NCBI GenBank assembly: GCA_977020255.1 | Contig: CDROCS010001566.1 | Span: 62,001 to 126,000, forward strand | From: Obrimoposthia wandeli | Lineage: Eukaryota | Length of the DNA stretch: 64,000 nucleotides | Direction of reading: 5' to 3' | In this document: piece by piece, positions 5,381-53,829 of the stretch | How the letters are laid out: each line of letters starts with the position of its first letter | How positions within the stretch are numbered: position 1 is the stretch's first letter | Program-made: the position numbers and the translations under genes | Notes under the pieces: generated by a model | Told to the model about the DNA's origin: nothing | Databases searched by the model: none | Seen by the model: the letters and a program-made list of their open reading frames with translations, nothing else

Positions 5381-5435
5381 ACATAGACATTTTTACTAGA
5401 CTCCTAATATAAACAATAACCTTTGCAAGATTAAA

Positions 5436-5489
5436 ACTGCGATAGCTGCCCGGTTATGCAGGACAGTCTAACTCCTGGAATGGGGTCGT
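5436..5489 (+). ncRNA. Candidate structured RNA / cis element, copy 2
   Basis: Near-identical to 760-812; lies 55 nt after the stop of ORF 5147-5380. Confidence 0.45.
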
Positions 5490-13305: not shown

Positions 13306-13724
13306 CAGGGTGTCCCATAACGAATTACCCATGTTAAAAAATATTATAAAACGATTATAAATTCGATCAAAATCTTCAAGATTTTTAACTTTGCATGGAG
13401 TATATATTTGCTACACATCCTTATTGTTTCGTTTTACTATATCAATTTTATCAATAAGATATGGCGCCAGAAACAAAACGTGCCCAACTTGTTGCATTAA
13501 AAAATGCTGGAATTTCTAACAGTGATATAGTAAAGCAGCTGGGTGTGTGTCGCAAAACTGTTTTCAACGTCTGGAAACGACATAATGAGGAGGCTACAAC
13601 ATTTGAGAAACCTAATCTAGGACGAAAAAGGTCAATCCGTATAAAACGAGTTGCTGAAGCTGTGATGAAACGAATCAAGAAGGATCCCCATAAAGCTATG
13701 AATATCTCAAAAATTAAAAAATAA
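13306..13724 (+). mobile_element. Tc1/mariner-superfamily 5' fragment (TIR + HTH-domain ORF 13461-13724)
   Basis: TA|CAGGGTGTCCCA terminus; HTH pattern GISNSDIVKQLGVCRKTVFNVWKR...GRKRS. Confidence 0.85.
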
Positions 13725-20829: not shown

Positions 20830-23560
20830 CTTGTTAATTTTCATTTTCCCTCTTCATACTTTTTATTCAGAATCATCGCTATTTCATTAAGTTTCTATGG
20901 CTTCTTTTCCTCCAACCACTTTTTACTTGCTGACCACATTGGCACTACTTCTTTCATCTCAAACATTCATAACAACCTCCACTTATCTCTAATATTTTTT
21001 CCTTCTTCTACTAATCTCACAACAGGTAATCAAGTAATAAAAATGTTTTGGGTGTCGTAATTTCTTACACTTTTCTGTCCATGCTCATGTAGTTAATTGG
21101 GCGATAATTTACTATCTGTTCTACTTTATTCAATATTGTCGCATCATCTTATAAATCCGCTTGTTTCTAATACCTGCATCATAACTTGAATAACTGATTT
21201 TATCATTATCTCAAAACTTTACCATCTTTCGGTGCAATAGAAGGGTTCAAAATCCATCTGATTTAGTTGCTCGTCAATTCTTTTTTTATCGTATAGCTAT
21301 CAATCATTATCTCTTTGATATCTCCAACAGTACCTACGAAATTGGAAATAATAGTCACTGTCTTATTCGTCGTCGCACAAACACTTTAAACATATTAAAA
21401 AACGTATCTGCGTCAATCTGTATGCCATTTTTCAAATTTATTATTCGCAGTTGCAGAAAAATAAACATGCATAAATATCGTTTTCTCCTAATCTTTCTTC
21501 TACCTTACTTAGTTAAAAATGCTCATAGGAATTTTGGTAACTTATATTTGTTGTTCTATATGTCGCGGTTTTTACCGTTTACACGATACATAATGGATAC
21601 CAACCTTTATTTTTAGCTGTCTCACCTTTAAGATGCAAAACATTTTTTGAAGTTGGCTTAATGCATATTGGATACTTGTTCAATGTCAATATTTTCTATA
21701 TTAGTATCGTACAATCAGTCTACTCAACCAACTTCTTTCTGATGACACTATGAAGTATTTAGTGTCAAAAACTAAACATACTGCTCACTAACATATAATC
21801 GTATAGAAATTGTTTAAATCTTTGTATTTTACTTTTCTTTGATACAGCTTCATCTTTTTGTATACTTTTGACTTTCTCTGGAAATAACTTCAATAGATTT
21901 CCCTTAATTAGATATCGTATTGAAAATTTAATTTCATCCAGCCTCAGCTCTTCTTGTCTTCATTTTTCTTGAGGTTTTGACAATTCAAGATGAAACGAGT
22001 TATCATGCTTTAATTTGTTTTAACTTCGAAAACGTTTCAATCTCCAAAAAAATTCTACTACAGCTTCTTTTAGTGGTAAAAAACACATCTCCAGTGATAT
22101 CGCTGTTGCCATCTCATTCACTAAATCGAGGAATTATTGGCGATTTTCTTATGTTTAACTAGGAATTCAGACAATTTCATTTTTCTGTAACTCAGTAAGT
22201 TCTACAGCCCCAATTCTCGTGACAACACATCCACAGAATTTTTCTTTATGGAACATACCTTCGCTGATTTGGTTCTTTTACCCCCAAAATGATTACTCAC
22301 TCGGTTTACGACAAATGGTTTATAATATCTCCATGGTTGTTTGATCCACCACAACACATATTCACTATCTAAGCAAAAAGTTAAGTTTTTGATAAATCTA
22401 CCCACTGTGTTTGAGAACCTATGCCTATTTTAAACCTTTGCAAGCTACCATAAATTCTAACCTTGGAATACTAATTAGTTTTAATGGAGTTACTCTGTCT
22501 TTTTCCATTTTTAATAATACATCAATTTCGTTCTGGTGAACACTTCTTACATATTCTACAGACCTAAGCGCACCATGACCCATCCACAAACCCATATACA
22601 TTTTGTCTGTCATATTTTGTTTTTCATAATACATCTAGGTTTTCTTAATTTCTGCAACGTCTCACATTACGAAATCAAAGAATGAGCGTTTCTCTCTAAT
22701 GGACTTTTAATAACTTCATACTAATTCATTCCACCTAACCAAATCTTTTGCACTAAAACTTTAGCACACATTATAAATGAACCCAAAATCCCAAGGGTTA
22801 AGATACTAAGAAATTGTCTTTTAGTCATATATATTTTTGCAATTTCTTATATTACTTTTAAGTGTGATATAGTCCTCTACATCATTCCATTTTTTTTCCT
22901 CAACGTTCTTATCTCTCTAATTTCAACTTGAATTTGCAATATACTTGCTGGTCGAATAATGGAATCGTATCATTGACTATTTTACTGTTTAATACCCACT
23001 TTTTAGCTTGCATTCCACTCCTTTCCCGTCCTCTTTTTATTCTGCAATCTTTCTTACATATATATCTGCCGTATCTACTGCAAACATTATCCATATACAT
23101 AGAGTCTAATATGAATTTTATGCTTTCTGGATATTCTTGTTGTAATTATTGTGCATTTTCATGCACCATAATCTGTACCAAAAATGGAGAAACATTTATG
23201 CCAAATACCAATCATTCATACTCATAAGCAATGGCACTGTTATTTTGTCCGAACAGCAGACATCCCAACATGATTGATTTCTTTCACTACTGCAAATCTC
23301 TTGTCTCTGGATCATCGTATCTTAATCAAGTTACTTTCGAATTTTGGCCAACTATAAATTATGGAATTCAAATACATTTCACTGGTGAGTCAAAAACAAT
23401 TCGAACCTTGGTTGTTTCTTTGTCTCAACGTAATAAAGGAAAATGTGATGGATACCAACGAGGATTTTGTTACAAATGTATACAAAAAAACATATAATTT
23501 GCACATATATATTTTGGGGGTTATAAATTCACCCAACCATGTTTTCACAATATATCAATA
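20830..23560 (-). mobile_element. BEL/Pao LTR retrotransposon pol relic (RT, RNase H, integrase remnants)
   Basis: YMDN (RT), FG..SPFL, KDRVTPLKLISIPRLE, LDSEYVLWWIK...FVVNRV and KNSVDVLSR (NPADxxSRG). A PPT-like GAAGAGGGAAAA followed by TG lies at 20843-20855. Confidence 0.85.
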
Positions 23561-27840: not shown

Positions 27841-28020
27841 AGTAGGTGGATGTGTCCGGTCTAATCCACAACCTCACTGTCCTTTAAAACCGTGTATGTG
27901 TGTGAAGTGAAATTCCGTGTATGTGTGTAGGAAAAAAATTAAAATAAGCAACGAATAGGAGGGGGTACCACTGTCCTTTAAAACCGTGCATGTGTGTGGA
28001 GTGAAATTTCGTATATATGT
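27841..28020 (+). repeat. Left TIR with tandem duplication of the subterminal module (27875 and 27969)
   Basis: CACTGTCCTTTAAAACCGTG(T/C)ATGTGTGTG occurs twice, 94 bp apart; the inverse is at 42575-42633. Confidence 0.9.
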
Positions 28021-28303
28021 GTCTCCATTCCACTCCCTCTTCACCCACATTTTTAAAAATTTTACTTTGAAATTTACCACGAATCTTGAAAGTGGTTAGA
28101 GAAGACTACGGAAATCCATATTGGACACGGCGGCTTATCGCAGACGAGATTTTAAATAATATATTACTACTATTTTTAAGAAAAATTTTAGATTACTACA
28201 TGTTAAATATTTAGGTCAGATTTATAAGATAAAAATTAGATCACTATATAATTTAGAGGAGTAAAAACAAAATACGAGTCAAAATTATTTTTCAAAACAT
28301 TTA

Positions 28304-28738
28304 TTAAACATAAAACAACATATTGGCTTCACTCAAAGTCCAAAGAGGCTGCATTTTCTCATCATCAGCAAAATATCCATTGAGACGTATTGATATATTC
28401 CATAGTTCTTCATCTAGAATTGGAGCAATCAAATATCCTAGATCATCTTTAAAATCCAGACTGGGATCAGTTTCAAGCTGGAAACAATTTCCTTCATATA
28501 CATAATCAGGAATGTAAAATCCCAAAATATTTTTCAATTGATCAATATCAGATGTTGTTAAAATTTCGATGAAAGATTTATTCTCCACTTTTGATATTTT
28601 CCCAGGATTCATAACTCGTATAATTTGATGCCTCTTTAATATATTACATAGTTTTCCTTTTGAAATTCTTTCTGGATAATAAAAATTTCCTACACATCTC
28701 TTATCCATACTAAAATAAGGAAACTGATTAAAAAACAA
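28304..28738 (-). CDS. Hypothetical 144-aa protein, paralog A (possible OB-fold/SSB-like)
   Basis: Intact ORF (true start may be an internal ATG); its C-terminal half aligns with the neighbouring ORF at 28851-29333. Confidence 0.75.
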   Translation of the reverse strand: MFFNQFPYFSMDKRCVGNFYYPERISKGKLCNILKRHQIIRVMNPGKISKVENKSFIEILTTSDIDQLKNILGFYIPDYVYEGNCFQLETDPSLDFKDDLGYLIAPILDEELWNISIRLNGYFADDEKMQPLWTLSEANMLFYV

Positions 28739-28850
28739 CGTTTATAAAAAAATACATATAAGATACAAATATTTTAAAAATAAAACTGAATATTAAATGA
28801 AAGAAACATAGTAAAACCGATTACAATTTATTATATGCAAAAGAAAAAAG

Positions 28851-29333
28851 TTAAAACATAGAAATATGAGCACGTTCAATTTTCCACATAGGTAACTTTG
28901 TCCCCATTTCATCTGTCTTGTAACCATAAAGTCGAATTGTTACAGTCCAATGCTTCTTTTTCTAAAACGCATCAATATCAACATATCTTCCATAGTCATC
29001 TAGAAATGCTTCATCGGGTCCTCGGATATAAAATTCGTTCTTATTGAAAGTAAAATTTGGAACTGCCTTTTCAACTTTCTGTTTAAGATATTGAAAATCT
29101 GGTTTTTGAATATTTCATAGATAGTAGCTGAACTTTCTTCTTTCAATTGTCACAGGATTTACTAATGCAATCAGTTGAGCCTTCTTCAAGAATCTGACTT
29201 AGTATTTGAAATATTGTTTCACTTCTTCATACATATCCTTATCCGATTCTTCAAACATTTCTAAATCTTCGTCACCGCTTAATATCCGTTGGCTATCGTC
29301 CATCATTGATAATTGTCTTTGATATGAATGCAT
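28851..29333 (-). pseudogene. Hypothetical protein, paralog B of 28304-28738, with stops (missed by the ORF track)
   Basis: Manual translation: ...PDFQYLKQKVEKAVPNFTFNKNEFYIRGPDEAFLDDYGRYVDIDAF*KKKHWTVTIRLYGYKTDEMGTKLPMWKIERAHISMF*. Confidence 0.75.
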
Positions 29334-29394
29334 TTACTGTGATTTTTCCTTCAATGGCGCATTCTTTTATTCTAATTTCTAACAAAGACATGAA

Positions 29395-29555
29395 TCTCAT
29401 TGGTTAATATAACTAAAGCATTGAATTTGATTGGACTAAATCCATATTAAAAATCAAATTTGATTGGAAGAAATATATTATCCAATTATCATAGGTTTGC
29501 AAGATAATTACAAGAAACGTGCAATAAAAAAGCAGGTTCAGACATATATAAAGAA
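29395..29555. promoter_or_regulatory. Divergent promoter with four CCAAT boxes and a TATA box
   Basis: ATTGG at 29399, 29430 and 29463; CCAAT at 29482; TATATAAA at 29545-29552 upstream of ATG 29583. Confidence 0.65.
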
Positions 29556-29582
29556 GATTTTATAGAATACAATTTTAGTCTA

Positions 29583-30079
29583 ATGAAACTCGTAAATATA
29601 AATTATAAAGGTAGAACAGAAGATGATGTTTCGTACTTACCATTCAATGAATGGAAACCGAAACAATATGTGAAAAAGTTTGACAATTTCACAGTTGTTA
29701 TGTTTCCAACAGGTTAGTTTTTTAATTTTCATATTGAATTCTTTTAGGAAATTGTCGTGTTATGGTATGCAAAGTACCTATTATTGGGTTCAATTTACCA
29801 TTTGGAATTCGAATCACTGCAATACAATCAATACATATTTCGGCTAATCTTGGGAAACAGATAAATCTTTTTAAAACTGCAGAGAAAATGAAAAAAGAAT
29901 GTATGTTTGAACCAGAAATTTTTCCTGCTCTCAGTTATTTGAAGTTTAAACCGCTATGTGTAAATATATTTTCCAGTGGTAAAGTTATGATATTTGGATT
30001 GAAAATTTTTGATTATCCAGACATTGTTGATTTGATTTTAGAAAATATATCTTATTACATCTTGTTATCTTTTCTATAA
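29583..30079 (+). CDS. TATA-binding protein-like, 153 aa; join(29583..29712,29748..30079), 35-nt intron
   Basis: The C-terminal repeat FEPEIFPALSYLKFKPLCVNIFSSGKVMIFGLK matches TBP YEPELFPGLIY...LLIFVSGKVVLTGAK. Splicing AG|GTTAGT..TTTTAG|G restores the N-repeat TVVMFPTGNCRV. The spliced ORF has no lesions. Confidence 0.85.
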
Positions 30080-30098
30080 ACAAACAAGTTTAAACTTA

Positions 30099-30380
30099 TT
30101 GTTTCAAATGAATAATACTATAAATAGAGACAATGAAGTGGATAGTCTTGCGAACGAAATATTTTCTGGAAAAATTAAGGGTAAAGACATTTTATCAGAA
30201 TTAAAAAATAATGATATAACAAGAGATAACATTGAAATATTGGTTAGATCACACATTATTCGAGAATTTAGAAATCGTACACAAATAAATAAAATTATAG
30301 CCAAATATTCATTAATTAATTTTTGTATTTCATCTACAATAGCTCTAACATTGTACATTTCAATAAGGAAACTTCTATGA
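30099..30380 (+). CDS. Hypothetical 93-aa protein with a C-terminal hydrophobic segment (ATG probably 30108)
   Basis: Intact ORF between the TBP-like gene and the ATPase; YSLINFCISSTIALTLYISI is hydrophobic. Confidence 0.6.
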   Translation: MFQMNNTINRDNEVDSLANEIFSGKIKGKDILSELKNNDITRDNIEILVRSHIIREFRNRTQINKIIAKYSLINFCISSTIALTLYISIRKLL

Positions 30381-30417
30381 TAATATAAACAATATTTAAA
30401 ATGAAAGAGTATATGCA

Positions 30418-31067
30418 ATGGAGTTAAATATTAATGCTGTATTTCAAATAGTTGGTCTCAGTGGAAGTGGAAAGACACATTTCGTATGTAAATTGTTGCA
30501 AAATGAATCTCTTTTCAAATCTAGTTTCAAAAATAAATTTATTGGCATCATGGTGGAGGAGGGGAAAGTGGATTAACCAAAACAGAAGTTTGCAAGTTGA
30601 AGGGAATACAATTTATTGAAGGATTTGATGCAAATTGGTGTGAAAGATTGAAAAAAGAAGATGTAATAATAATTGATGATTTGTATGAGGAGGCTAACAA
30701 GGAATCGGACTTTAAAAATTTATTTACAAAGATTGCAAGACATCGTGAAGTAACAGTTATATTTATCACTCAAAATCTTTTTCATCAAGGAAGTCACCAT
30801 AGAACTAGAAATCTTAATGTACATTACTTAGTTTTATTTTAAAATCCTAGAGATCAAACAGTTGTTGATTTCGTGGCCAGACAGACGTTTCCTCAAAATA
30901 AGAACTTTCTAGTTGATTCATTCCACGATGCTGCTAAAAAAGCATATGGGTATATATTTATTGACTTTACACAAGCTTGCCCAGATGATTTACGTGTTTT
31001 AACCGACATATTTAGTTCTAAGGGATTAACTGTTTATAAACAAATAGAGAACAATCATAAAAGATAA
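30418..31067 (+). pseudogene. ATP: A32-like FtsK/HerA genome packaging ATPase (frameshift near 30540, TAA at 30840)
   Basis: Walker A GLSGSGKT, Walker B VIIIDD, ITQNLF, VLF*NPRD and YGYIFIDF. Confidence 0.95.
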
Positions 31068-31244
31068 ATTTACAATACCTTTTAAGAAGTTGAAAGTAAA
31101 GCGTAAAGCAAAGCCTAAAAAATCAAAAAAAGAATCATTAAGAAAAAAGAAGTGAAAAAATTAATCAAATCTGTAGTTAGAAATAAAAAAAAACTTAAAT
31201 GGCTTCAAATATAAACAATATTCAAATTGAACCTTTTTATTAAA

Positions 31245-31500
31245 ATGAAGAAAATACAAAAAAGCATACCCTATTTTAAAGCTTTAGTCAAAGCCTCTTC
31301 TCATAAGAGAATTATTATTCTTAAAGCATTTTCATCTTTTGTTGTAGATGATTTATTGGAAGTTTTGTATAATATTGTTTTGGATCGAGTAAAAGTTGGA
31401 AATCGGAAAAATATATTAAAGAAATATAGAAAAACTCTTCTAGATATTGCTAGATACGTTCATAAACAATTATTTCTAAAATCAGCTAAAGATATGGGTG
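31245..31500 (+). pseudogene. Basic Polinton core-like protein, C-terminus apparently lost
   Basis: KALVKASSHKRIIILK....VDDLLEVLYNIV....LKKYRKTL fits a recurrent Polinton ORF pattern; a Lys-rich remnant lies upstream at about 31070-31215. Confidence 0.55.
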
Positions 31501-31551
31501 CTAACCCTTCTTTACCTAAATTTAAATTTTCTTTCTATTCAAATTGTTGTA

Positions 31552-32575
31552 ATGTAGAAGATATGGTTCAATCCAAAAGATCCAATTGGCTACACGGGAG
31601 TTTCAAAATTAGCAAAAGAACAAAACAAAATTACAAGAAAACGCAGAAATGGCTGAGTGGTCAGTTAGCCTTCAGTCTGAACAAGCCGATGAAAAGAAGG
31701 TTTCCAACTAGAGCTTACAAAACCAACGGTCCTAATAATTTATGGCAAATGGATTTGATGGAGATGATCCCATATTCTTCCATTAATAAGGGATATCGAT
31801 ATATTTTAACATGTATTGATGTATTTAGCAGGTTTGCTCGTGTATTTCCAGTCAAAGCAAAGTCTTCAATAGCTATGCTTGAAGCCATTAAAGAAATATT
31901 AAAAGAGGACATTCCACAAAATGTACAAACTGATTTAGGAAAATAATTTTATAATTAGCAAGTTCAATCATTATTTAAGCAAAATAATATAAATCACTAC
32001 TCTGTGTTTTCACAGTACAAAGCAGCAGTAGTAGAAAGATTTAATCGTACTTTAAGAGATCGAATAAAAAAGTATTTCACGAAAGAAGGAAATAAAAAAT
32101 GGATCCAAGTTTTACCTAAAATAATACATGCATATAATCCCTCTGAACACATAGGTCTCAAGAGAATGAGACCTGTTGATGTTACTAATAAAAACTCTAT
32201 GGATATTTGGATGGACAAGAATAAAAAAGAAAATACTAAAAAACCTAAATATAAGAAAAACGAATATGTTCGAATTTCGAAAATTAGCTCTACTCCATTT
32301 ATTAAAAACTTTGATCAGAATTGGAGCGATGAAATATTTTATATAAGTAAAATTGATCAAAAGAGTAATCCAATAATGTATACTATTGAAGATGCTGACA
32401 ATAATATCTTTCACGGTAAATTTTACGAGAACTACAAGTAATATCTAATAAACCTAGCGTTTTCCGTATTCAAAAAATATTAAAATCTAAGGGTGCCAGT
32501 AAACATAAACAATACTTTGTTAAATGGCATGGTTATTCAGACCCAACTTAGATATCAGCATCTAAAATAATATGA
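31552..32575 (+). pseudogene. INT: Retroviral-type DDE integrase with C-terminal chromodomain (about 6 lesions)
   Basis: WFNPKDPIGYTG, WQMDL, IDVFSR, QTDLGK*F, VVERFNRTL, NWSDEIF and chromodomain YFVKWHGY. Confidence 0.95.
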
Positions 32576-33614
32576 AGTCTATGTATATGGTGTTACCTAG
32601 TAACGGATGCCTGAAGACTCAACCAGATAATGACGCTAGTAACTTTATTATCGATTGGGAAAATCCTATAAATCTCCAAGGATTCGGGAAGCGGCTTTAA
32701 CATATTTTTTTTATTATTCTCCAATTACTATTAGAAAAAACTCACATATTTCGTTTACAAAAGTAAATCAACTGAAGTTGTGATTGGTTTTGATAGTAAA
32801 GGACAATTCTATTACAATTGTATAGATAAAGAAGTGAAAGTAATACTAGAAAATAACAAAGTCAGATGTAAAAATCGATTAAAATATCTTCAAGTTATTA
32901 AAATTAACTTTGAATCTAAAAAAGAAGCTCTTCAATTCAGTTTTGATAGTGAATAAACAGTAGCTCGTAATAAACGGGATATAGTCTCATATAAATCGGT
33001 TAGAAATGTTCCTGGTAAAGTAGCAAAAGTGATGTTACTTGAAACGAGACCAAAGACTGTAGTGGAACTGAAAAAGTTTTCAAAAGATTATAAAATAGAT
33101 AGTGAAGTAGGATTTATGTAAATTAATACAGAACGAATGTAGTGAATATTTCGATAAATGTGAAACATTAAATGGTAAATTAATGTTTACAGTAAAGAGC
33201 AATATAAAACGAGTTTCATTTGATGATAAACTTGCTAAAAACCTTGGTTTAAACAGAAATACCTTTGAAACCCATACAATAAAAACCATAAAAGCTAAAA
33301 ATAAGGCAAAACTTTTAAATGCTGTTAATAATTTATATATTTATACTAATTTAATAGAACCAACGCTTGTAGGAGGACAGCGAGTTCCACTTTTGAGAAC
33401 AATATGGATATCTAAAAATGAAACTAGATATGGGGACGCTGTCGGTATGTGTATAGATCAACCAATGTATCTTCCAGTTTCTCTCTTTTCTTTAAACAAT
33501 ATTGAAGTAAATATTAGAGATGATTCCGGACAACTAATAGATTTCACGTACGGGGCCAACACAAGTTTAACAATACATTTAAGAAAACAAAATGACGAAT
33601 CTAGCATTAATTGA
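32572..33614 (+). pseudogene. PX: Minor capsid protein (penton, single jelly roll), frameshifted
   Basis: N-terminus YMVLPSN...PDNDASNF; C-terminus LYIYTNLIEPTLVGGQRVPLLR...PMYLPV...IEVNIRDDSGQLIDF...TIHLRK. Confidence 0.9.
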
Positions 33615-33960
33615 GGCTTATAGTCAAAGCCAACAAGGTGGAGAATTACCATATTTTGTTGGTAAACAATATGGATCTGGCTGGCTTAGAACATTAGTTA
33701 GATTTGCCTTTCCTCCTTTAAAGAGACTCGGGCGAATTATATCAAAATTAGGAAAGTATTACCTTTCATCCAAGGACAATAAACTAATACCAACTTTTAA
33801 GAAGCATACACTTGATAATGTTTTACCTGAAGTTGCTAATTTGATTAGAAAACATAAATCAAATAAAAGCCAAGAAAGTAGTGGATTTAAACGTAAAAAG
33901 AAGCAAAAAATCAATATAAACAAACATAAGAAAGTTCAAGGAACAATATTTGCAAAATGA
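33592..33960 (+). CDS. Conserved Polinton virion core-type protein (QxGG / GxG motifs, amphipathic helix, basic tail)
   Basis: YSQSQQGGELPYFVGKQYGSGWLRTLVRFAFPPLKRLG; sits directly before MCP with an ATGA overlap. Confidence 0.8.
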   Translation: MTNLALIEAYSQSQQGGELPYFVGKQYGSGWLRTLVRFAFPPLKRLGRIISKLGKYYLSSKDNKLIPTFKKHTLDNVLPEVANLIRKHKSNKSQESSGFKRKKKQKININKHKKVQGTIFAK

Positions 33961-35186
33961 GTTGCGCCAAAACCGAATTGTGTATTTTTGATAAACCACT
34001 TCCACAAGTAGTTGTAGATAATGCTTCCTTTGAAGAAATATTTCTAGTTAACTCAGTTTCAGGAACCACTTTAACCGATTTAGAATTTAATATTAATGGT
34101 TCCAATAGGGAATATTTAGATTTGAATGATACTTTGCTTTATGTTCAAATAAAAGTATTAAATCGGGATGGTACTAATTTAGAGGAAAATTCCGATGTAA
34201 CACCTGTAAATTATCTCTTTAATTCTTTATTTAGTGTTGCCATTGTTACTCTAAATAATGTCAAAATTGAAGGTGGAAATTATTCCTATGCTCATAAAGC
34301 TTTGATTGAACGTCTTTTGAATTATAGTACTGATACTCAAAATACTAATTTGGCAACCATTGGTTATGATAAAACAGTTGCAACTCGCAAAGAATGGATT
34401 GCGGGTTCTAAAGCTTACGAAATGTGTGGGTCTTTGAGATTAAATTTCTTTGAACAACCGAAATATTTAATTCCCGGTGTTAATGTACATCTTCGTTTGA
34501 AACGTAATAAATGGAATTTTTCTTTGATAAGCACAGACGTTCTAAAACCTAGACTTGATATTTTGGATGCAAAATTGTATATCCGAAGAGTTAAAACGGA
34601 GCAATCAGTTTTAATGGCATCTAATATAGGAATGGAAAAAAACAATGCTTGTTATCCTATTAGAGAAACTAAACTTATATCCTATTCTTTAGGTACGGGT
34701 ACACAAGCTTTTCATAAGAATCAAATATTTGGTGATGTAAGAATACCGAAATTCATTTTAATTTCTTTTCAAATAACTGCAAAATTTCTAGGAAATTATA
34801 CGACAGATGCAACTCAATTTGACAATCTTAATGTAGGTTCAGTGACACTTTCAAGAAATACTGATTATCGCGAAACATATAAAACAGATTTCGAAGGTAA
34901 CGCTTATGCTTTGGCTTATACGCAATCTTTTATTCGGAATTTGGGTCAACTAGATAAAAATATAAACAATGGTATTTCTTTCACTGACTTTAAAACTGGC
35001 TGCCCGTTCTTCACATTTGTTTTGGCACCAGACTTTGATATAAACCAATGCCAACTACCAAAGGATGGAAATTTACGACTAGAAATTAAGTTCAATGCAG
35101 CTTTAACACATCCTACTACGGTTCTTATTTACGGAGTGTTTGATTCGGAAATACAAATCAATAAAAACAGAACTGTCATATTATAG
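33957..35186 (+). CDS. PY: Major capsid protein (double jelly roll), 409 aa, open ORF
   Basis: CAKTELCIF..P.PQ, LEFNING...YLDLNDTLLYVQIK, ERLLNYS, QPKYLIPGV and LRLEIKF..AL......IY. Confidence 0.95.
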   Translation: MSCAKTELCIFDKPLPQVVVDNASFEEIFLVNSVSGTTLTDLEFNINGSNREYLDLNDTLLYVQIKVLNRDGTNLEENSDVTPVNYLFNSLFSVAIVTLNNVKIEGGNYSYAHKALIERLLNYSTDTQNTNLATIGYDKTVATRKEWIAGSKAYEMCGSLRLNFFEQPKYLIPGVNVHLRLKRNKWNFSLISTDVLKPRLDILDAKLYIRRVKTEQSVLMASNIGMEKNNACYPIRETKLISYSLGTGTQAFHKNQIFGDVRIPKFILISFQITAKFLGNYTTDATQFDNLNVGSVTLSRNTDYRETYKTDFEGNAYALAYTQSFIRNLGQLDKNINNGISFTDFKTGCPFFTFVLAPDFDINQCQLPKDGNLRLEIKFNAALTHPTTVLIYGVFDSEIQINKNRTVIL

Positions 35187-35187
35187 A

Positions 35188-35552
35188 ATGAAGTAAGACA
35201 TTTTTAAAATTTATATTTATTATTTTTTATTTAGTTCAGTACAAGTACAAGAATCAGCATAAAGGTCCTGGGTGATAAATTCAATGGAGTTTATCCAATT
35301 GATATGATCCCATTTTTTCAATCTGGAGGTTACATTATCAATACTCATACTTCGAATTTACCGGGAGAACATTGGATAGCTATTTATGTTAGAGAGTGGA
35401 CAATACATGTATTTGATCCACTTACAATGTATTATCCACATAAAATTGTTTCAACTATTCAAAAAGGATGAAGAAGAGTATTTTACAACAAGATACAATA
35501 TCAGGATCCTGCAACGAGAAACTGTGGAAATTTATGTATTTTATGGTTATCG
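35188..35552 (+). pseudogene. PRO: Adenain-like cysteine protease with a 42-nt intron (35193-35234), a 1-nt deletion and one TGA
   Basis: FNGVYPID, IINTHTSNLPGEHWIAI, VFDP and QYQDPATRNCG (His/Asp/Gln/Cys). ATGAA|GTAAGA..TTTAG|T gives MNSVQVQESA. Confidence 0.9.
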
Positions 35553-35829
35553 TTGCAAAACGATTAGTGTGTTATAAAAATAAATATTTTAAATGTTTTA
35601 TTTTGAATTATTTTTTTTAAATCCCTAAAAAATATAAGGTAAAATAATAAAAGACATAAGACGAATTTTTTTTAATACATTTATTAAACACAACATCACA
35701 ATGAGATCTGTCAGCAAAGATAAGGCCCAACCTAAAAATGTATTGAAATAACAAAAAGTTAGAGTCAATGTGCCATAGGGATCTAAAATTTTAAAAATTA
35801 AACTAAAAAAATCAAAAAATGAAAACCGT

Positions 35830-38800
35830 TTAAATTCGGAAGTGTCCATAAGCCAGGCTAGCGTTCTTTTCTACTTAAAAGCGCTTGTCGTCATTACTAC
35901 TCAAAGCGATTTTGGTTGATTTATGGGAATACAGTTGATGGGCTCTTGAAATAAATCTAGTTTGCTCAACGCTTTCAATACACCCAGTATCATAAACATT
36001 CCGGTAGGCCCCATGTGTAAGATTGTTTCTTCCCACACCCTTTGCTCTCATTGAACATGTATTATTAGATGCATGTAAACTGTAGCATTTAGGGCGTAGG
36101 AAAATACAATCCTCATACGAAACCTGTCCCTCGCTTTCATCTTTAAATTTCCCGATAATATATTTTAAACCCATAGAGTGTAGAGGATGGTTAGCGGGGT
36201 ATTTATGGGTATCTAGTAAGTTGTCCCTAAACATTGTTGGTAATAATTGATTATTTAAACTAACATTCCTACATTCTAAAAAGAAAGAGTCAGTGTCCCC
36301 AGCTGTGAATTTGATCTCACAATTGAATTCTTGTCGATATTTCTCTAATTCTATGTATTGAAGCTCGTACATTCTGAGTTTAGAAATGCCTAAAACCGTT
36401 TGACCTATATAACTCGGTCGATCGAGACAAATACTCTGTTTTCCTAATAACACTGCTACCAAGTCATTTGCAATTGTAAAACTACGATTGAAGTTGTACT
36501 TGCTAGTATATGTTATTAGTTTACGCTCATCATTGCAAAACCGTAGACAAATACGTTTCCGCAAGTCCTCTACTGTTTTTCCAAAGAGACTATTACTTTT
36601 TAATTTATAAATATCCCGATCGAATTTGCTAGTGGCCAAATTACGTTTTCTAGAATTCTTCTCAATATAGTCTTTAAACACAAAGTGTTGACTGAAGCTT
36701 ATAGCACGATGAATTCAAGTGACTTTCGCTTCCAACTTAAAGTAGAATTGAAGAAGCCGCCAATGCACTACATAATTCAGCTTATCTTCATGTGTTAACA
36801 ATAATTTCTTAACCTTTGAATTAGGTGGACATTGATGAACAGGCGCTACTGGAAGATCATTTAATTTATCATGCACATTGGGAGGGATTTTTAAGTCAAC
36901 CTCAACCAAATAGCCGACGTCAGCTGAAACTGTATCAACAGTAGCCAAATCTGTCATCAACTTATTCAACTCTTCCTCATCATAAACCCACTTAAAGTTG
37001 GCATGAGGTAGAGGTTGAGTAAGCGCCCACCCATACAAATTATTGATGTCGATGTACAGAATCTCCGTGGATTGATTTTTGACAACATGATGTTTGTTGA
37101 CAAAAGTCATTCCACCGCGTATACCATAATCATACATTTGATACATCGCGGGATCTTGCAGTAACTCGATATTAATTTCAAGAGTTTTATTGCCGTTGCC
37201 CATGAAAGACCAGGTAAACTAAAGATATGCATGGGATCTAGCCCATCTTCTGCTAAAGATTTTACACGAAAGGACTCAAAAACATCAGCTAAAAGATAAA
37301 TGTCTAACTTCATATAATAAAGCATATATTCTAAAAAATTTCGACAATTATTCGCCCAAAATGTACGGGCCTCATTATAGTCTTGAAGACTTACATCCTC
37401 AAATTCAGTTATGGATGAGATTTCAGTAGTATTTTCAAAATCTGCAAAGGTTTTCGCAAATTTATACGGAAAAATCCCCTTATCATTAACCGAAGCTGAG
37501 AACACTGACTGTGTGATTGACCATGCATTTAAAGATGCCGTTAAATTTTTTAAAGACCCACTCAAAACCTGCAGAGAATCTATGAATCTTAAACTGCAGA
37601 ATTCAGTATATGCAGTTACAGATAAATATTTCTCTGAAGTTTGAGGTATACATGAAATTTCCCAAGAGCTTAATGTACCAAACGCATATTTAAGTATATG
37701 ATGCAAATCATATCCTTTGAGGTTATGAAACACGATGGGAATGCGTGGTTTTTTAGGGAGACGACAGCCAAGGTCACAGAGGTTGCACGCCGCTCCCAAG
37801 TATCGCCCCGTAACATGATCGTAATCTCTGACTAACTTAGACTGGGTTCCACACAAATAACATAATCTACAAGAATTAAAATTAACCCAGTCTATGCCTG
37901 TCATGATCATTGCTTGATGAGCATTAAGATCATACCACTGTTTGACAATTGTTGTTCCTAATTCTTCTAATTTCAACATAAAATCTAAAATACAATTTTG
38001 ACCGGAAAATTTATGATACTGTATAATATTGGGGCCTAAGAATAGTAGTCCTGCCGAAGCCGGTAGGTGAATACTCTCATACTGGTCGTGCAATGCTAAA
38101 ATTGACTCAAAATCTGCATACACCCTGAATTCCACGGGTATGCATTTTGCCCAATCCCTGAATTTTAAATCCTTATCCTTAGGCATGCTGTATAGCGTAT
38201 TGTCATCAGGATTCAGTGAACATAATGTCAGATATTTGCTGTAAGAGAGCTCGGATCGGAATCCATGTAAACATCTATGACACCACTAACACTTTATCCT
38301 AACCGGTAAGGCTCCATTATATAAATTTAGAAGACGATCTAAATTGGGAATTGTAGCATAATGGAATTTTTTATTATGTTCGAGCAAAATTAAGTTGACC
38401 TGAGTCCCCTCATCTTTGCTCCTATAAATTACATCTACAAAAGGATTTTGAAAAATTTCTTCATCTGTTACATTAACTGGGATATCAGTATTATATTTAA
38501 ATACATTAATACTCAATTTATTAAGGTGTTCAATTCTTGATATCGCAGTTAATTTAACAGGAAAATCTATTCCAAGATACTGCAATTCATTTAAAAAAGG
38601 GGTATATTTACTGACACGCTCTCTATGCTCAGTAATTACATCCCTTTTGAGGATGGCCAACACGCTATACATAAAGCAAAGGTTATCACTGTTTTGTACG
38701 TTAACAATGGAACGTGAAAGTTGAAGAGATCTAGGCGAAGGAATGTATGAACTCCCCGAAAGATATATCATGTCAGTGAACTTTGTTAGAACAAAGGTAA

Positions 38801-39203
38801 CATCGTGAATTCTAACTAGAGTCCATCCACTATTTAAACCGCTATAATTAGCAATTTTTTCATCTAGGTTTCTTCCAATTTCAGTTACAAAATTATCATA
38901 GAAAACAGTTGCTTTATGTAAAATTACCCAAGTTTTAGTCTCCTCATTGACATTTTTAAACTGCACTGTTGCGCAAATTTGAACCTTAGCCTGTTCTAAT
39001 TTAGTCACTTCTGATTTTAAAAGATTTTCAATATTTGAATCTACACCTACGTTTAATAAACTTTTATTTCCTAATGGCACCTTAACTATAACATATTTAT
39101 TATTTAGGTGATACTCTATAGTAGCACCGTTTTCTCTACGTTTTTTTGGTGGAACTTTATTAAGAAATTGGCCTCGCCTCTTTTTACCTACATTCACTGA
39201 CAA
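35830..39203 (-). pseudogene. POLB: Protein-primed DNA polymerase B (TAG 38286, frameshift near 37190, TGA 36715, TAA 35875)
   Basis: VYADFES, RDYDHVTG, FHNLKGYD, FIDS, GIRGG, YIDINNLYG, KLKSNSLFGK, GDTDSFF, RPKCY and DDKR..AYGH; the four ORF-track pieces join through three in-frame stops and one frameshift. Confidence 0.97.
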
Positions 39204-39700
39204 ACCTCCCCCTAATTGAACGGGAAGACAACTAGTTATATTAATAGCAGCTGAGGTGGAAGGTGCTGCTAATGGTGATGCTGCTGATGTTGAGGCAATC
39301 GCAGCTGTAGTAGTATATGATGCTGTAGTAGATGCTACCGCAGATGATGAGACAGTAGATGCTGCATTTGAAGTAGGAGTAGCTGAGGTAGGAGTTGACC
39401 TTACCGATGAAGAAGCGGCTGTTGCAGAAATTGAGGCTGCTGAAATAAATATATTAAAAAATAAATATAATTTTAAAAATTATTACCTCCAGGCGTGCTA
39501 ACATCGATGTAGGCACTCGCGATGGTGGAGGCATAGCTGTCGTAGCAGATGACGGCTGTATCAAGGTACTTCCTGAAGAAAAAAAAATATAGATATAATA
39601 AAAAATAAAATATATATAATTACAATTTTAAAAAAATAAATAAAAAAAACCTAATGAAGGCAATCTAACTGTAGCTGGTTGGAAGTCCCAAAGAAAGTGT
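39204..39700 (-). other. Putative spliced Ser/Thr/Ala-rich N-terminal extension of pPolB (candidate introns 39440-39486 and 39573-39650)
   Basis: The frame is open upstream of 39203 (AASISATAASSS...QLGGGLS). Two AT-rich GT..AG blocks separate GC-richer segments. Frame continuity across exons is ambiguous. Confidence 0.5.
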
Positions 39701-40907
39701 TTGCTTATATACTAAAATTTATGCACACATGCTCTTTTCTTATTGGATGAAAAATTGATTTTATTCCTCCACTGAGAAGGATTGTTTATCTGTTATTGGT
39801 TGATAATATTATTTTTAATATTTTTTATTCCTCCAATTAAAAGGCTTATTTGTAATTGGATGAAAAATTTATTTTAAAAATAATGAATTTCTCCAATTAG
39901 AAGAATTGTTTATCTACATGTCAAATAATAATAAGATAGACTTAAACATTTTTTATATGCGCAATGGTCACCATGACTACGACATGGACAGCAAATATTT
40001 CGTGGAATTTCAAGGTACTTCTTGAAGAAAAAAAAATATAGATATAATAAAAAATAAAATATATATAATTACAATTTTAAAAAAATAAATAAAAAAAACC
40101 TAATGAAGGCAATCTAACTGTAGCTGGTTGGAAGTCCCAAAGAAAGTGTTTGCTTATATACTAAAATTTATGCACACATGCTCTTTTCTTATTGGATGAA
40201 AAATTGATTTTATTCCTCCACTGAGAAGGATTGTTTATCTGTTATTGGTTGATAATATTATTTTTAATATTTTTTATTCCTCCAATTAAAAGGCTTATTT
40301 GTAATTGGATGAAAAATTTATTTTAAAAATAATGAATTTCTCCAATTAGAAGAATTGTTTATCTACATGTCAAATAATAATAAGATAGACTTAAACATTT
40401 TTTATATGCGCAATGGTCACCATGACTACGACATGGACAGCAAATATTTCGTGGAATTTCAAGGTACTTCTTGAAGAAAAAAAAATATAGATATAATAAA
40501 AAATAAAATATATATAATTACAATTTTAAAAAAATAAATAAAAAAAACCTAATGAAGGCAATCTAACTGTAGCTGGTTGGAAGTCCCAAAGAAAGTGTTT
40601 GCTTATATACTAAAATTTATGCACACATGCTCTTTTCTTATTGGATGAAAAATTGATTTTATTCCTCCACTGAGAAGGATTGTTTATCTGTTATTGGTTG
40701 ATAATATTATTTTTAATATTTTTTATTCCTCCAATTAAAAGGCTTATTTGTAATTGGATGAAAAATTTATTTTAAAAATAATGAATTTCTCCAATTAGAA
40801 GAATTGTTTATCTACATGTCAAATAATAATAAGATAGACTTAAACATTTTTTATATGCGCAATGGTCACCATGACTACGATATGGACAGCAAATATTTCG
40901 TGGAATT
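39561..40907. repeat. Near-perfect tandem triplication of a 449-bp unit containing the pPolB promoter
   Basis: Units start at 39561, 40010 and 40459; I saw only two single-base differences. Confidence 0.95.
39700..39900. promoter_or_regulatory. CCAAT-rich divergent promoter (first of three copies)
   Basis: ATTGG at 39742, 39795 and 39855; CCAAT at 39833 and 39893; minus-strand TATATAA at about 39705-39711. Confidence 0.6.
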
Positions 40908-41640
40908 TTTAATAGATGATCACGAGAAATATTTAAAGTATTCAACCTCAATTTGGGAAAATATATTTTTAAAGTCTTATACTTTTTGCCATCCATTTCA
41001 TCTAAAACATAAAAAATTCCATTTTCAATATCAAAATTAGATTTTATTATATCGAAAATACATATTTCAAAAAAAGCCTTATGACCTTCTTTCCATTTTA
41101 ATAAATGGAAATAATTAGTTAGATATAAATTAGTAAATTTTTATTTATAATCTAAACTTCTAAATGGGATATTTATATTTATATGAAATGCAAAGGATGA
41201 AAAACGTCGCATACATCCATAATACATAATTCTTTTATAATATGATCACCATTTTTGTTAACGAAAGCCTCAAAATCTATGATGTATTCCTGCATAATTA
41301 CCCAAATTTGTATCCAATCCCTTTGTTTATAACGAATAAAAAAATCATTAATCAAAAATTTATTAAAATAACAAATCAGGATTCAGTCTTTCATGTTAAG
41401 ATTGGTATATATTGTCAATTATCCTATGAATATAAAATAAATTATATTAAACATACCTAAATATTTCGAAATTAAATTACATATTTTATCTTCAATGATT
41501 TCCGGACTATTATTTTCTGAAAAGTAATTTTTTTTATAATCTTCCTTTAAATCTGGAGATAATTTTATGTATAATTTATTCCAATTTTTATTATCCATTT
41601 TACAAAAAACATTATATAAATTTATTTATATTTAGACAAT
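40817..41640 (+). pseudogene. Degraded hypothetical Polinton accessory gene
   Basis: ATG TCA AAT start, open for about 75 codons, then stop-interrupted pieces including ORF 41242-41460; its 5' end is duplicated in the 449-bp repeats. Confidence 0.45.
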
Positions 41641-41713
41641 TATGTAACATAATAAATAAAGACAAAATAATATTCAAAAAATTAATTTTTTTGTGGAAGG
41701 ACCCTCTACCTGT

Positions 41714-41998
41714 TTAATCTGGAGGATTCTCTTTCTTGCTACTCGCCGAACATCCTCCACCTCTTCTTTTTTCATCCACCTTCCTTTTTTCCAATTCGAT
41801 CTTCTTGTTCCACTCCACGCACCGACGTCGTTCTGCTAGCCGCCTATCTTGTATCTCCACCCGGCGATTCCACTCGGTCGCGACAGCAGCATACAAATTT
41901 TGATTGAGGACCCTCTTTCTTAAGTCTCCTTTCTTCTCATTTATTCTGATGTTTGCTTCCATCTTCGTTACCAAACCTTGCAATTTAATGAATTCCAT
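41714..41998 (-). CDS. Hypothetical 94-aa charged, coiled-coil-like protein
   Basis: Intact ATG ORF, R/K/E-rich; TATA-like tract at about 42030 and CCAAT at 42168 upstream. Confidence 0.65.
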   Translation of the reverse strand: MEFIKLQGLVTKMEANIRINEKKGDLRKRVLNQNLYAAVATEWNRRVEIQDRRLAERRRCVEWNKKIELEKRKVDEKRRGGGCSASSKKENPPD

Positions 41999-42454
41999 TT
42001 TTAATTATGAAGAGGTTAATAAATTTGAACCTATATATATAAATTTAAGATATTTTTAATTCAATCACAGGCAATTAAACGATATATTTTTATTTATCAA
42101 ATTAGAGTTTAATAAATCATTGCATTTATATTTAATCCTAAAATAATTTAAATGATTCCTTATTAATCCAATCACAGTCGAATAAATTTACTATTTTTTT
42201 CTTCTTAATATTTTAATGTTAAATAAATATTAAGAAGAAAACACATGAAATTAATTTTTATAAATTATATTCTTAAAAATCTTTACAAAGTAAAAAAAAA
42301 ACTAGCCTTTTGAATGTATCTGGATATAAATTTCTCGCGTACAATTATTCACGCCCGCAGGTATTGTCATATACAATTTTTCGCGACCCTGTATATATAT
42401 GTATTGCTCGTCAAACCACCGCGGGCCCGGAGGGCACGCGTTGGCCCCTTAGAC

Positions 42455-42633
42455 GGCCTCTCAGGACCTTCTTCACGTTTTTGGGAGCACTATGAGATTT
42501 TCAATTTTAAAGGGTATTATATGGGGTTAATTAGTTTTTTTTGAGTGTTGGGGGGGGGGAAGGGGTAGAAAATTTATCTTTACACACATGCACGAAATTA
42601 AACTCCACACACGCACGGTTTAAAAGGACAGTG
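42455..42633 (-). repeat. Right TIR/subterminal region, terminal ~34 bp missing
   Basis: Reverse complement matches 27875-27930 and 50-215. Confidence 0.9.
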
Positions 42634-43449
42634 GGGGAGATGGCTTTGTTTTAATTGTTTAATAATTTAAGAGTACATAATTTGTCTTTGTGTGTAAGAA
42701 AGTAATGAAACCAGAACTTATTTGTCATTCAATCATTTTTAATTTAAAAATACAATAAGCTAATTGATGTGATTATATTGTTTAAATTTAAAAATTAAAC
42801 AAACAAATTAAACGCTAAAAACGCTACTTAAGTTGACTCTCATAATCTTGAACAATTTAACGAATAAGAAATAACTTTTAGAAAAAGAATATTTACAACC
42901 TGAAGTAGAAATTTATAATTAAATTTTAAAATTTAAGAAAATAATAGGCTTGTTTAATGTTTAGATAGAAACATTGTATTGCTGATAGACAGATTAAATA
43001 AAGCACATTTCTGTATTAAATATATGTTTAATGAAAGGTATATAAAATTTTAATATTTTTTCATACATTAAGATTTTTGTTGTTGAATTAAGTGTATTTT
43101 AAAGTAATTTAAATCCATCTTGTTTTTAATTTTAAAAATCATTTTTTCAATTAAACACAAAATGTAGTTTACACATTATTTTTATTGGAAAATTTAAGAA
43201 AACGATTTTGTGAAAGAAAATAGAAAATTAAAACTCAAACAGAATTAAATAGAAAACTGTCTGTTTATTTGGTATAAGTCATTAAGTCATTAAATATCAA
43301 ACCAATGTGCCGAATCTGTAATCAACTACAGTTTTCAAGTACAACTTTACAAGACATCACATGGTAAAACATCAAACTTTTGTAAATACCTACCCATTAT
43401 TGTCAGAGGCCAGGCAAATAAAGCTGAAGTAGGTGATGTTTTCGAATTT

Positions 43450-51930: not shown

Positions 51931-52553
51931 CTGTAAACGGTTCATTTTTGATTAAATGAATGTTGTTACTTCAGCTTTTTGTTTATATTATGTGAAAATA
52001 TGTCATATGGATATATTTGGGACAATTTAATTTTAGAAATTTATTATTTCGTTTTATTAATATAGCTAAGCAGAACTTAAGAAAATATGTCTTTCAATGA
52101 AAATAAACATTAATGTTATCTCGAACATATTTAAATTTCTAGTTAGTACAGTATAAATTTGTAAGAGTCCATACAGAAATCCTGATATGGTAGACATAGC
52201 ATACATACAGGTTTTGCCAGAATCTGCAATTTGTTTTGTTAGGTTATTTATTTTATTTAAAAAATATTTACCTGTACTCTAATTATTTATTTTAATTGTT
52301 TGGTTAGAAATGTCTAAATTTTACAAACCCTGTAACTTTCTATTTTATGAATATTCCTCAAATATTGTTTTTACATTTTATGGTATACTTGCTGAAATAG
52401 TTTCATAAAAGAGATAGCCACATGTTTATTTGAAATATTTAAAACTACAAATCGAAATACCCAAGAGACAAAACAATTTTAACGGGTACTCCTTAATTTC
52501 GATTAATCTTCTTTGAGAGCTTGGTATCAGAACACACACAGAGACGCACCGAC

Positions 52554-52830
52554 CTTGAGTCGCTGCTCGTCGTTCAGATTGACTCCAGTTCCGGCAGAAC
52601 CCGGCTCGGAGGTGAGTTCGTCGCACGAGACAGCAAGCAGCACGCAGGCGGCCGTGTGTCTCGCGATTCCGGAGCATCGACCAGACACAGTGCAGACCCT
52701 TGTGCGCACCATCTGACCACCGAGACCACAGCTGCGACTGCATACCGTCCAGGGCGACCAGGATGACCACTCCGGTCGACGAGGTGGCACCTCACAGTCG
52801 CGGCCGGAGAAACCCGCAATACAGGTGCAG
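52554..52830 (-). CDS. Host gene exon: end of an EGF domain + thrombospondin type 1 repeat
   Basis: GTCAG|C TGC ACC TGT acceptor; CTCIAGFSGRDCE and WSSWSPWTVCSRSCGLGGQMVRTRVC; donor AAG|GTCGGT; GC-rich island. Confidence 0.9.
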
Positions 52831-53829
52831 CTGACACAGACCGGGAGAACTGACTTATTTGGGAGCACAAATACGAGACGTTCAACGAATTGTAGTACTA
52901 CAGATTAAGCTAGAATTATATTTACTCTTTGTTGTTTAGTTTTCTAAAATTTAAAAAGAATTTTATTATGATAAAGCATTATATTTTAATTTCTTAAAAT
53001 AATTTTAATGGTATAGCCCGGGATAAACTGAAAGATTCGGCTTTTATTTTTGTACCAATATGAATTTAAAAATTGTTTCGTTTATTTTTTATGTTATAAA
53101 TACTATTTTCATACTCTGTTGTATTATTTTTATCAAATTTAGTTCATACAACTTGTATTTGAACTGGCTTGTATTTAAAGAAAAAAATCTTTAATTCGAT
53201 ATCAAAGCAATAAATCTGATAATTTTCCCAATGGAAAAACCCAACTGGGCCCCAGCATGAACATATTTTCAATTTTCAGGACACTGGGGAATAGCTGGAC
53301 ATTATTACTTCGGCACTACAAAAATATGCAGGAACAAATCCATTAATATATCCATTGCTCAATATTTGCCCAGAATTATCCAGCTCGTATTTTCAATTTG
53401 TCCAGTTAAATACGTTCTAAACTTGAGGCACATGTGAGCCTCAGTTAAACACCAGAAAGAAAAAAAATCTGCATTTAATGAACATTAAGCCGTGTCGAAT
53501 TAATCAACAAATGATTGATCGTCAGCCATAAAGCCAATGAGCTTTCTGTTGGGCATTTGTTAGAATATAGTTTTCTTGATATCCTGTTAAATTATAATTA
53601 TCTTCTTGCAGGCATAGCATACTTATTGCTATAAGGTGTGAGATTTGATACTGTTAGTTCAATTCAAATGGTATATGAACAATCTATCTTTTGTTATGTA
53701 CCTAAGTAAAACCATTAAAATTACGGTGTTTCTCGGCATGTGTTAAGACACCTGAAAACTAAATTTTGATTTTATACAGAGACTTTATATAAAACACAAT
53801 ATGTTATACATAGCTTTTATTCAACAATA

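Follow-up and report, generated by a model that had tools for sequence, protein, structure and literature searches.

The window analysed here, a stretch of 64,000 nucleotides (nt) of contig CDROCS010001566.1 from Obrimoposthia wandeli in which position 1 is the first letter, carries a Polinton-type element that codes for a short homologue of the TATA-binding protein (TBP), to which we refer as mini-TBP. Mini-TBP belongs to the regular gene set of one clade of Polinton/adintovirus-like elements and, according to its predicted structure, it keeps the curved sheet of TBP, with a complete C-terminal repeat and an N-terminal half that retains its strands and has lost both of its helices. On balance, we favour the reading in which the window gene is a member of this family, that is, a clade-wide Polinton gene with a reduced TBP architecture that would serve as the promoter factor of the element itself. 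A first reading made from the sequence only (here, the sequence-only reading) had placed the TBP-like gene inside a virus-like Polinton of about 15 kilobases (kb), and this is what was found: the element measures ~14.8 kb and contains genes for a protein-primed DNA polymerase (PolB), an rve integrase, a packaging ATPase, capsid proteins and a protease, as well as inverted repeats.

Homology, fold and distribution of mini-TBP

The window gene is split into two putative exons, of which the second carries the similarity to TBP at the sequence level. Exon 2 alone (109 amino acids, aa) scores 42.1 bits against the Pfam family TBP (PF00352; gathering cut-off 22.9 bits, E 7.6e-11) and matches solved archaeal and eukaryotic TBPs with E values down to 3.3e-12, and exon 1 alone has no meaningful Pfam match and no sequence match to TBP. 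The profile of the whole family reaches solved TBPs at E 2.2e-22, and in this comparison it is also the C-terminal repeat alone that matches by sequence. The fold of the whole protein was examined in P0002, a relative that shares 53-59% identity with the window exons, and exon 2 of the window was modelled separately. The AlphaFold2 model of P0002 (45 sequences) has a predicted local distance difference test (pLDDT) of 96.8 and a predicted template-modelling score (pTM) of 0.87, and the model of the window's exon 2, built with the family alignment, has a pLDDT of 92.6. In a Foldseek search of the PDB, the first 44 chains matched by the P0002 model are TBP (probability 1.0; template-modelling score on the query, TMq, 0.64-0.73), nothing besides TBP scores below E 0.06, and the alignments span both repeats, i.e., the whole core (174-183 columns, 19-26% identity). 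The top 44 PDB matches of the exon-2 model are also all TBPs (root-mean-square deviation of ~2.4 Å over ~82 columns, 28-40% identity), and the TBP fold expected from the sequence was thus recovered by Foldseek both for the relative and for the window's own exon.

In the P0002 model, residues 66-154 form a full strand-helix-strands-helix repeat, and residues 1-60 consist of strands with no helix (as assigned by DSSP), the only helices of the model being those at 86-96 and 136-154. Cellular TBP is marked by two helices per repeat on its convex face, four in total, and those of the N-terminal repeat are missing in this model. When the N-terminal and C-terminal halves of the family were compared with hhalign, window residues 26-54 aligned to residues 103-131 (probability 89.7%, E 1.8e-6), and, because it aligns to its own C-terminal half in this profile-profile comparison, the N-terminal half is better regarded as a truncated repeat than as an unrelated extension. 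This alignment and the Foldseek result on P0002 indicate two tandem repeats in one saddle, as is characteristic of TBP, which bears out at the level of fold and profile the initial description of two TBP-like repeats with a shortened N-terminal one. Profile scores differ little between archaeal TBPs (82 bits) and eukaryotic ones (68-76 bits) and do not assign the family to an archaeal-like, eukaryotic or giant-virus origin.

Residue conservation was computed over 43 relatives. All 43 have Phe at three positions that correspond to the DNA-kinking phenylalanines of TBP (F41, F102 and F118), as does the window. F102 lies in a motif, (Y/F)EPE(L/I)FPA, whose aligned counterpart in archaeal TBPs is the EPE-x-FPG stretch, and residues E98, P99, E100, F102, P103 and A104 of this motif are retained by 39-43 of the 43 relatives and by the window; judging by this conservation, the acidic hairpin of the C-terminal repeat, a hallmark of TBP, would be present. 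The second hallmark, two pairs of kinking Phe, is incomplete, as the fourth position is non-aromatic: an internal repeat alignment identifies residue 25 as the N-terminal partner of F102, and this residue is Lys in the window and P, K, T or S in the family. The four kinking positions had first been given as three Phe and one Tyr; the three Phe were correctly assigned, but the Tyr (Tyr-29) is not the fourth position and belongs to a column that is variable in the family (C, K, F, L, A, Y and others). Because residue 25 is non-aromatic and the Tyr-29 column varies, the family counts three kinking aromatic positions instead of four. The window protein keeps 23 of the 25 columns that show at least 85% conservation.

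A profile search of 1.84 billion representatives returned 1516 matches at E <= 0.001, of which 206 reach E <= 1e-10 and 36 reach E <= 1e-30, most of the matches being proteins of 140-180 aa aligned end to end. A second family search gave 1035 clusters at E <= 1e-8, nearly all from metagenomes, and where a source names them it is with an automatically assigned 'TATA-box binding protein (TBP) (component of TFIID and TFIIIB)'. Eight related Polinton contigs were examined, three of them picked via their TBP-like protein (L002, L003 and L004 in our numbering) and five via their capsid protein alone (L006, L009, L011, L012 and L013), and mini-TBP is present in all eight. The five picked by capsid are long contigs with 46-58% capsid identity, and each has a gene that matches Pfam TBP. 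In the other three the gene lies within the block of ATPase, integrase and capsid genes: in L002 and L004 it is found a few genes upstream of the ATPase gene, like in the window, and in L003 the protease gene and a 150-aa gene precede it. Copies in other Polintons, for which the sequence-only reading had proposed to look, are found in eight of the eight related contigs. Nine more contigs of at least 5 kb have equal length in the capsid and TBP match lists, which suggests that capsid and TBP genes co-occur in them as well, and a scan of IMG/VR with P0002 gave no confirmed locus.

Several accessory genes lie near mini-TBP in the relatives. MATH/TRAF-domain genes are located just upstream of it in L002 (854-1858 and 5476-6447) and L006 (3952-4941), and L013 and L004 contain a dUTPase gene (1649-2092) and a gene for a RING-finger protein (1446-1868), respectively.

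Splice model and putative promoter of the window gene

The ATG of the TBP-like gene is at 29583, and the unspliced frame runs for 44 codons to a stop. Removal of a 35-nt GT..AG interval had been proposed to give a 153-aa open reading frame (ORF), and its coordinates (29713-29747) proved exact: the joined exons form a coding sequence of 462 nt (153 aa) with no internal stop, in which a Gly codon is split by the junction. The interval starts with GTTAGT, ends with seven pyrimidines followed by AG (TTTTAG) and has 17% G+C. A first protein search returned three uninterrupted relatives of 146-157 aa, ~50% identical to the window protein, which are colinear with it through the exon junction. Exon 1 is 58% identical to the first 44 residues of the relatives (e.g., residues 1-44 of P0002), the alignment of exon 2 resumes at the next residue but one, and the split Gly fills the single column between them. 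Similarly, tblastn with ten relatives aligns the gene in two pieces and two frames, with ~32 additional nt and all residues retained. Against a hidden Markov model of the family from which the window had been left out, the joined product scores 170 bits in one stretch (positions 1-149), versus 37.5 and 118.5 bits for the separate exons. The splice model is supported because uninterrupted relatives are colinear across the junction, and the 35-nt interval looks like a spliceosomal intron in its sequence, its removal restoring exact colinearity with the intronless relatives.

Another short interval is found in the relative L006, whose TBP-like gene (4989-5454) contains a phase-0 GT..AG interval of 40 nt, located at another site and again exactly colinear. 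The remaining genes of that element are open, and it was assembled in three independent runs (L006, L007 and L008). Family matches that start with 'MGCK' were considered as a sign of a common intron, an idea that was rejected for L004, where the upstream part continues without a gap and only a called start codon is missing. At the other end of the window gene, an imperfect palindrome (30066-30117) lies directly 3' of the stop codon and reaches into the beginning of the following ORF.

A TATA-like box precedes the start codon in each of the ten TBP-like genes read, at -34 to -50 in all ten and at -34 to -43 in nine of them. The chance of a TATA-like match per 16-nt window in these loci is 0.061, which gives P ~1e-10 for nine out of ten, with a motif set that was chosen after inspection of the sequences. 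Positioned TATA boxes are also found in the relatives before TRAF/MATH genes and some small genes, those of the MATH/TRAF genes of L002 and L006 being located ~35-37 nt before each start. CCAAT/ATTGG boxes occur upstream of the TBP-like gene in five of the ten; they were seen in L001, L002, L011 and L012, with a background of 0.41 per 130 nt, and the divergent promoter region of the window contains two TTTGATTGG repeats (inverted CCAAT boxes) at 29400-29480.

Proposed role and competing explanations

In cellular TBP, the C-terminal hairpin is the contact for TFIIB, and the N-terminal helices are the surface on which TBP regulators act. If mini-TBP is the promoter factor of its element, the host would use the gene's own TATA-box promoter, of an ordinary kind, to transcribe it, the protein would sit through its sheet on AT-rich promoter DNA of the element, and its conserved C-terminal hairpin would recruit host TFIIB and RNA polymerase II (Pol II), with the outcome that the densely packed structural genes would be transcribed without TFIID. 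Because the helix surface used by TBP regulators is lost, mini-TBP may be unregulated by the host, and a protein without the N-terminal helices would in this way escape the host's TBP regulators. A more ambitious version, which we put forward tentatively, would make mini-TBP a core and ancient gene of an animal-associated Polinton clade, with the smallest known natural TBP architecture, made up of one full repeat and a half of strands only, with a TFIID-free start of Pol II transcription that the host's TBP regulators could not reach, and with short introns at two sites.

Several observations weigh against the role as promoter factor or against the window gene as an example of it. Classical TATA-box binding is not assured, because the fourth kinking Phe and the N-terminal helices are missing. 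In the relatives, no positioned TATA box was found before the ATPase, integrase, capsid and protease genes, which are tightly packed or overlapping, and no motif is common to the upstream regions of their structural genes. In the window protein, Val replaces a Gly conserved to 98% and Ser replaces an Arg conserved to 86%, and the window copy of the element has decayed, six of its genes containing at least 13 breaks in total. The 35-nt interval is absent at the matching site in nine of the nine relatives read at the DNA level. Finally, short introns in the other broken genes of the element were considered and rejected, since the frame changes leave 0-5 nt between the aligned pieces.

Part of this evidence also belongs to the alternative that survives best, although we judge it rather unlikely: the window gene would be a dead relic, and the 35-nt interval a decay insertion with GT and AG ends by chance and not an intron. 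The gene had been described as intact, which is right in that its ORF is open, but the element around it has six broken genes and two of the 25 near-invariant positions of the protein are changed, and function in the window copy has probably been lost, or was never under host selection. The capsid gene, a 122-aa ORF and, given the intron, the TBP-like gene are still open in the element. The openness of the last is uninformative on selection, because ~1.4 breaks per kb would, by our estimate, leave 462 nt unbroken about half the time, and an unbroken ORF is compatible with a relic, as is an interval that all nine relatives lack. However, the other lesions of the element are frame changes of 0-5 nt and point stops, and this one measures 35 nt; the combined chance of its GT..AG ends, its GTTAGT start, its seven pyrimidines, its 17% G+C and the lack of any residue change is, in a rough estimate, well below 1 in 1000; and L006 has a short GT..AG interval in the same gene family within an otherwise open element. 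The frameshifts were also considered as homopolymer sequencing errors, which is unsupported: no close-range frame change lies beside a homopolymer run, and for this reason the frame changes are probably real.

Unlikely, too, is a role directed at the host, already raised in the sequence-only reading beside that of a possible late-gene activator, in which mini-TBP would be a dominant-negative mimic that competes for TATA boxes or soaks up TFIIB and thereby damps host transcription. A protein that keeps the DNA-facing sheet and a TFIIB-type hairpin, and from which the partner-binding helices are gone, has the design expected of a competitor, and no element-specific promoter motif was found. Nevertheless, a pure inhibitor would not need three kinking Phe in 43 of 43 relatives or a precisely conserved hairpin, and the constant position of the gene, heading the structural block or directly after it, fits a role in the element's own programme. 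We give little credence to a non-transcriptional DNA bender acting at the ends or origin in protein-primed replication or packaging: the TBP fold is a general minor-groove bending device and the packaging ATPase gene adjoins mini-TBP in most relatives, but the strongest conservation is that of the TFIIB-contact hairpin, which a pure bender would have no reason to keep, and the gene is not beside the ATPase gene in L003 and L011. A host TBP paralogue or retrocopy merely lying inside the element, the one-off insertion that would have undone the sequence-only reading and for which the 35-nt GT..AG interval is the sole host-like feature, is refuted because the related Polintons carry the gene (all eight contigs, in conserved synteny), and, in addition, whole-model identity to cellular TBP cores is only 19-26% and a retrocopy would be intronless.

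The element, its surroundings and related systems

The gene order of the element is colinear with that of L002, L003, L004, L006 and L009 (tblastn), and in the resulting map (Table 1) the TBP-like gene is the first of the plus-strand block extending from ATPase to protease, as had been noticed at first. The combination of PolB and integrase, a hallmark of Polintons, is present in the form of DNA_pol_B_2 and rve matches; the rve match (31.6 bits, on a broken piece) is just below the cut-off of 32.6, and the integrases of the relatives have full rve matches. The ATPases of the relatives show faint Pox_A32 matches. In gene order and sizes, the putative capsid module agrees with that of Polintons. 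The predicted major capsid protein of the window matches 151 relatives at E <= 1e-10, with identities of up to 60%, and an exact look-up of this protein returned no record. A PHROGs search with seven ORFs of the element gave nothing useful. The terminal inverted repeats are 55 nt long and 84-85% identical, the two left units lie 93 nt apart, and no target-site duplication, which in Polintons measures 6 bp, is readable at the element ends. The conserved 150-165-aa gene of the relatives adjoins mini-TBP directly in L003 (5813-6307) and L011 (10736-11215), and its broken homologue on the minus strand of the window (39913-41295) possibly contains a partial duplication.

Table 1. Features of the Polinton-type element in the window, with breaks counted against relatives in which the gene is open
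Feature	Coordinates	Strand	Breaks	Remarks
Whole Polinton-type element	27875..42634	+		~14.8 kb; inverted repeats; decayed endogenous copy
Left terminal inverted-repeat region	27875..28022	.		Unit in tandem twice, 27875-27929 and 27968-28022 (blastn)
Small conserved gene, divergent from TBP-like gene	28863..29147	-		tblastn to positional equivalents in L002 (6796-7125, minus) and L004; no Pfam family
TATA-like box TATATAAA	29545..29552	+		38 nt before start codon
TBP-like gene, exon 1	29583..29712	+		130 nt; 43 codons and first base of split Gly codon; strand-only N-terminal half (predicted)
Candidate phase-1 GT..AG intron	29713..29747	+		35 nt; predicted from signal shape and colinearity
TBP-like gene, exon 2 including stop codon	29748..30079	+		End of N-terminal half and complete C-terminal TBP repeat
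Pfam TBP (PF00352) match	29819..30004	+		Residues 24-85 of exon-2 translation; contains EPEIFPA and the Phe before SGK
Open 90-aa ORF between TBP-like gene and ATPase gene	30108..30380	+		No Pfam match; unmatched by genes of relatives
Packaging ATPase gene, broken	30418..31046	+	1 frameshift, 1 in-frame stop	Walker A motif; 71% identical to L002 ATPase
rve integrase gene, broken	31558..32572	+	1-2 frameshifts, 3 in-frame stops	One piece matches Pfam rve (31.6 bits)
Penton-like (minor capsid) gene, broken	32548..33587	+	At least 1 frame change, 0 in-frame stops	tblastn to 346-370-aa genes of L003, L004 and L011; putative capsid role from position
Small conserved 122-aa ORF, open	33592..33960	+		Matched by genes of relatives (tblastn)
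Major capsid protein gene, open	33957..35186	+		409 aa; assigned from size and position
Adenain-like protease gene	35238..35558	+	0 frameshifts, 1 in-frame stop	tblastn to relatives with weak Peptidase_C5 matches
Protein-primed PolB gene, broken	35836..39203	-	1 frameshift, 2 in-frame stops	Three ORF pieces match Pfam DNA_pol_B_2 (46.5 bits at best)
Homologue of the conserved 150-165-aa gene of relatives, multiply broken	39913..41295	-	Several, at least 1 in-frame stop	Spread over 1.4 kb; no Pfam family
Right terminal inverted repeat	42581..42634	.		Single copy; inverted match to both left units (blastn)

The element lies in an animal genome, as indicated by a thrombospondin type 1 repeat and a Pao peptidase elsewhere in the window, which has ~30% G+C. 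The first belongs to a G+C-rich host exon on the minus strand (52527-52868) that encodes an EGF-like stretch and the repeat (TSP_1, 31 bits). The second is one of several remains of other mobile elements, which comprise a transposase helix-turn-helix (13461-13724, plus strand), the Pao/BEL peptidase (22202-22634, minus strand, 22.8 bits), a mariner-like C-terminus recognised by eye (58438-58713, minus strand) and a weak reverse transcriptase of the long interspersed nuclear element type (61093-61305, plus strand). Rfam and transfer RNA scans of the window were empty. A second fragment of a protein-primed PolB gene lies at 2080-4630 on the plus strand, in five aligned pieces and three frames, with an Endonuclease_7-like stretch at 2847-3353; neither a capsid block nor a TBP-like gene adjoins it, and it has almost no nucleotide similarity to the main element. 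An Endonuclease_7 domain match, as in this fragment, is also found in the PolB of the relatives L009 (1-2421) and L013 (9926-13786).

Mini-TBP resembles cellular TBP (PF00352; PDB 1cdw, 1ytb, 1mp9 and 2z8u) in the sequence of the C-terminal repeat, the fold of the whole core, the sheet, three kinking Phe and the EPE-x-FP hairpin. It differs in size (~150 aa versus a cellular core of ~180 aa), in its helix-free N-terminal half with one kinking Phe missing, and in being encoded by a mobile virus-like element, whereas cellular TBP is the product of a host locus. The best viral fold matches, in a search of BFVD, are TBPs of giant viruses (Nucleocytoviricota; E 2e-8 to 1e-4), including those of Heterosigma akashiwo virus and mimivirids and a homologue of the asfarvirus protein B263R; these are proteins of 186-500 aa that are only 10-20% identical to mini-TBP. 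Giant viruses have genomes of hundreds of kb that encode an RNA polymerase, whereas the window element has 15 kb and no polymerase subunit, and because of this lack mini-TBP would have to work with host Pol II. In beta- and gammaherpesviruses, a late-gene protein with a TBP fold brings host Pol II to viral late promoters and is thus an analogue in the action proposed here. This viral TBP (BcRF1/U58) gave weak fold matches (E 1e-3 to 4e-3, TMq 0.37), and no sequence similarity was found between mini-TBP and the BcRF1/UL87/ORF24 family, of which it is not a member. The herpesvirus proteins have 577-1005 aa and act in a six-protein complex, unlike the ~150-aa mini-TBP.

A full-text literature search that combined Polinton, Maverick or adintovirus with TBP terms returned a single relevant source (Starrett et al. 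2021, Virus Evolution 7:veaa055, PMC8502044), in which the legend of Fig. 5 labels a 'TBP' gene in MELD (Polinton-like) viruses. According to this source, MELD viruses are midsize linear double-stranded DNA viruses with an adintovirus-like PolB, and their TBP-like gene appears there as a label in the legend only, the paper analysing neither a family nor its architecture, conservation or distribution. The same legend also lists 'TRAF', to be compared with the MATH/TRAF genes found beside mini-TBP in L002 and L006. A survey of Polinton protein structures published in 2024 (PMC11161782) does not mention a factor of this kind. The earlier statement that no Polinton TBP had been described was therefore nearly right, the exception being the 'TBP' label in that legend (PMC8502044). 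As far as our literature search found, the gene had been glimpsed and not analysed, and no description exists of the family, of its reduced architecture, of its presence throughout the lineage or of its promoter.

To our knowledge, next to nothing is known of how Polintons and their free-living relatives express their genes, and their standard gene list contains no transcription factor. A TBP homologue conserved across a clade is a concrete candidate for this missing transcription step, and it links these small elements to the strategy by which giant viruses and herpesviruses supply a TBP-like factor of their own. The reduced architecture is also a natural experiment for telling the parts of TBP required in promoter recognition from those required in regulation. 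Over 1000 database entries that are automatically labelled as cellular TBP are probably viral, which is relevant to the annotation of metagenomes. Finally, if the introns at two sites in two elements are true, they would mean that these elements undergo the same processing as ordinary nuclear genes.

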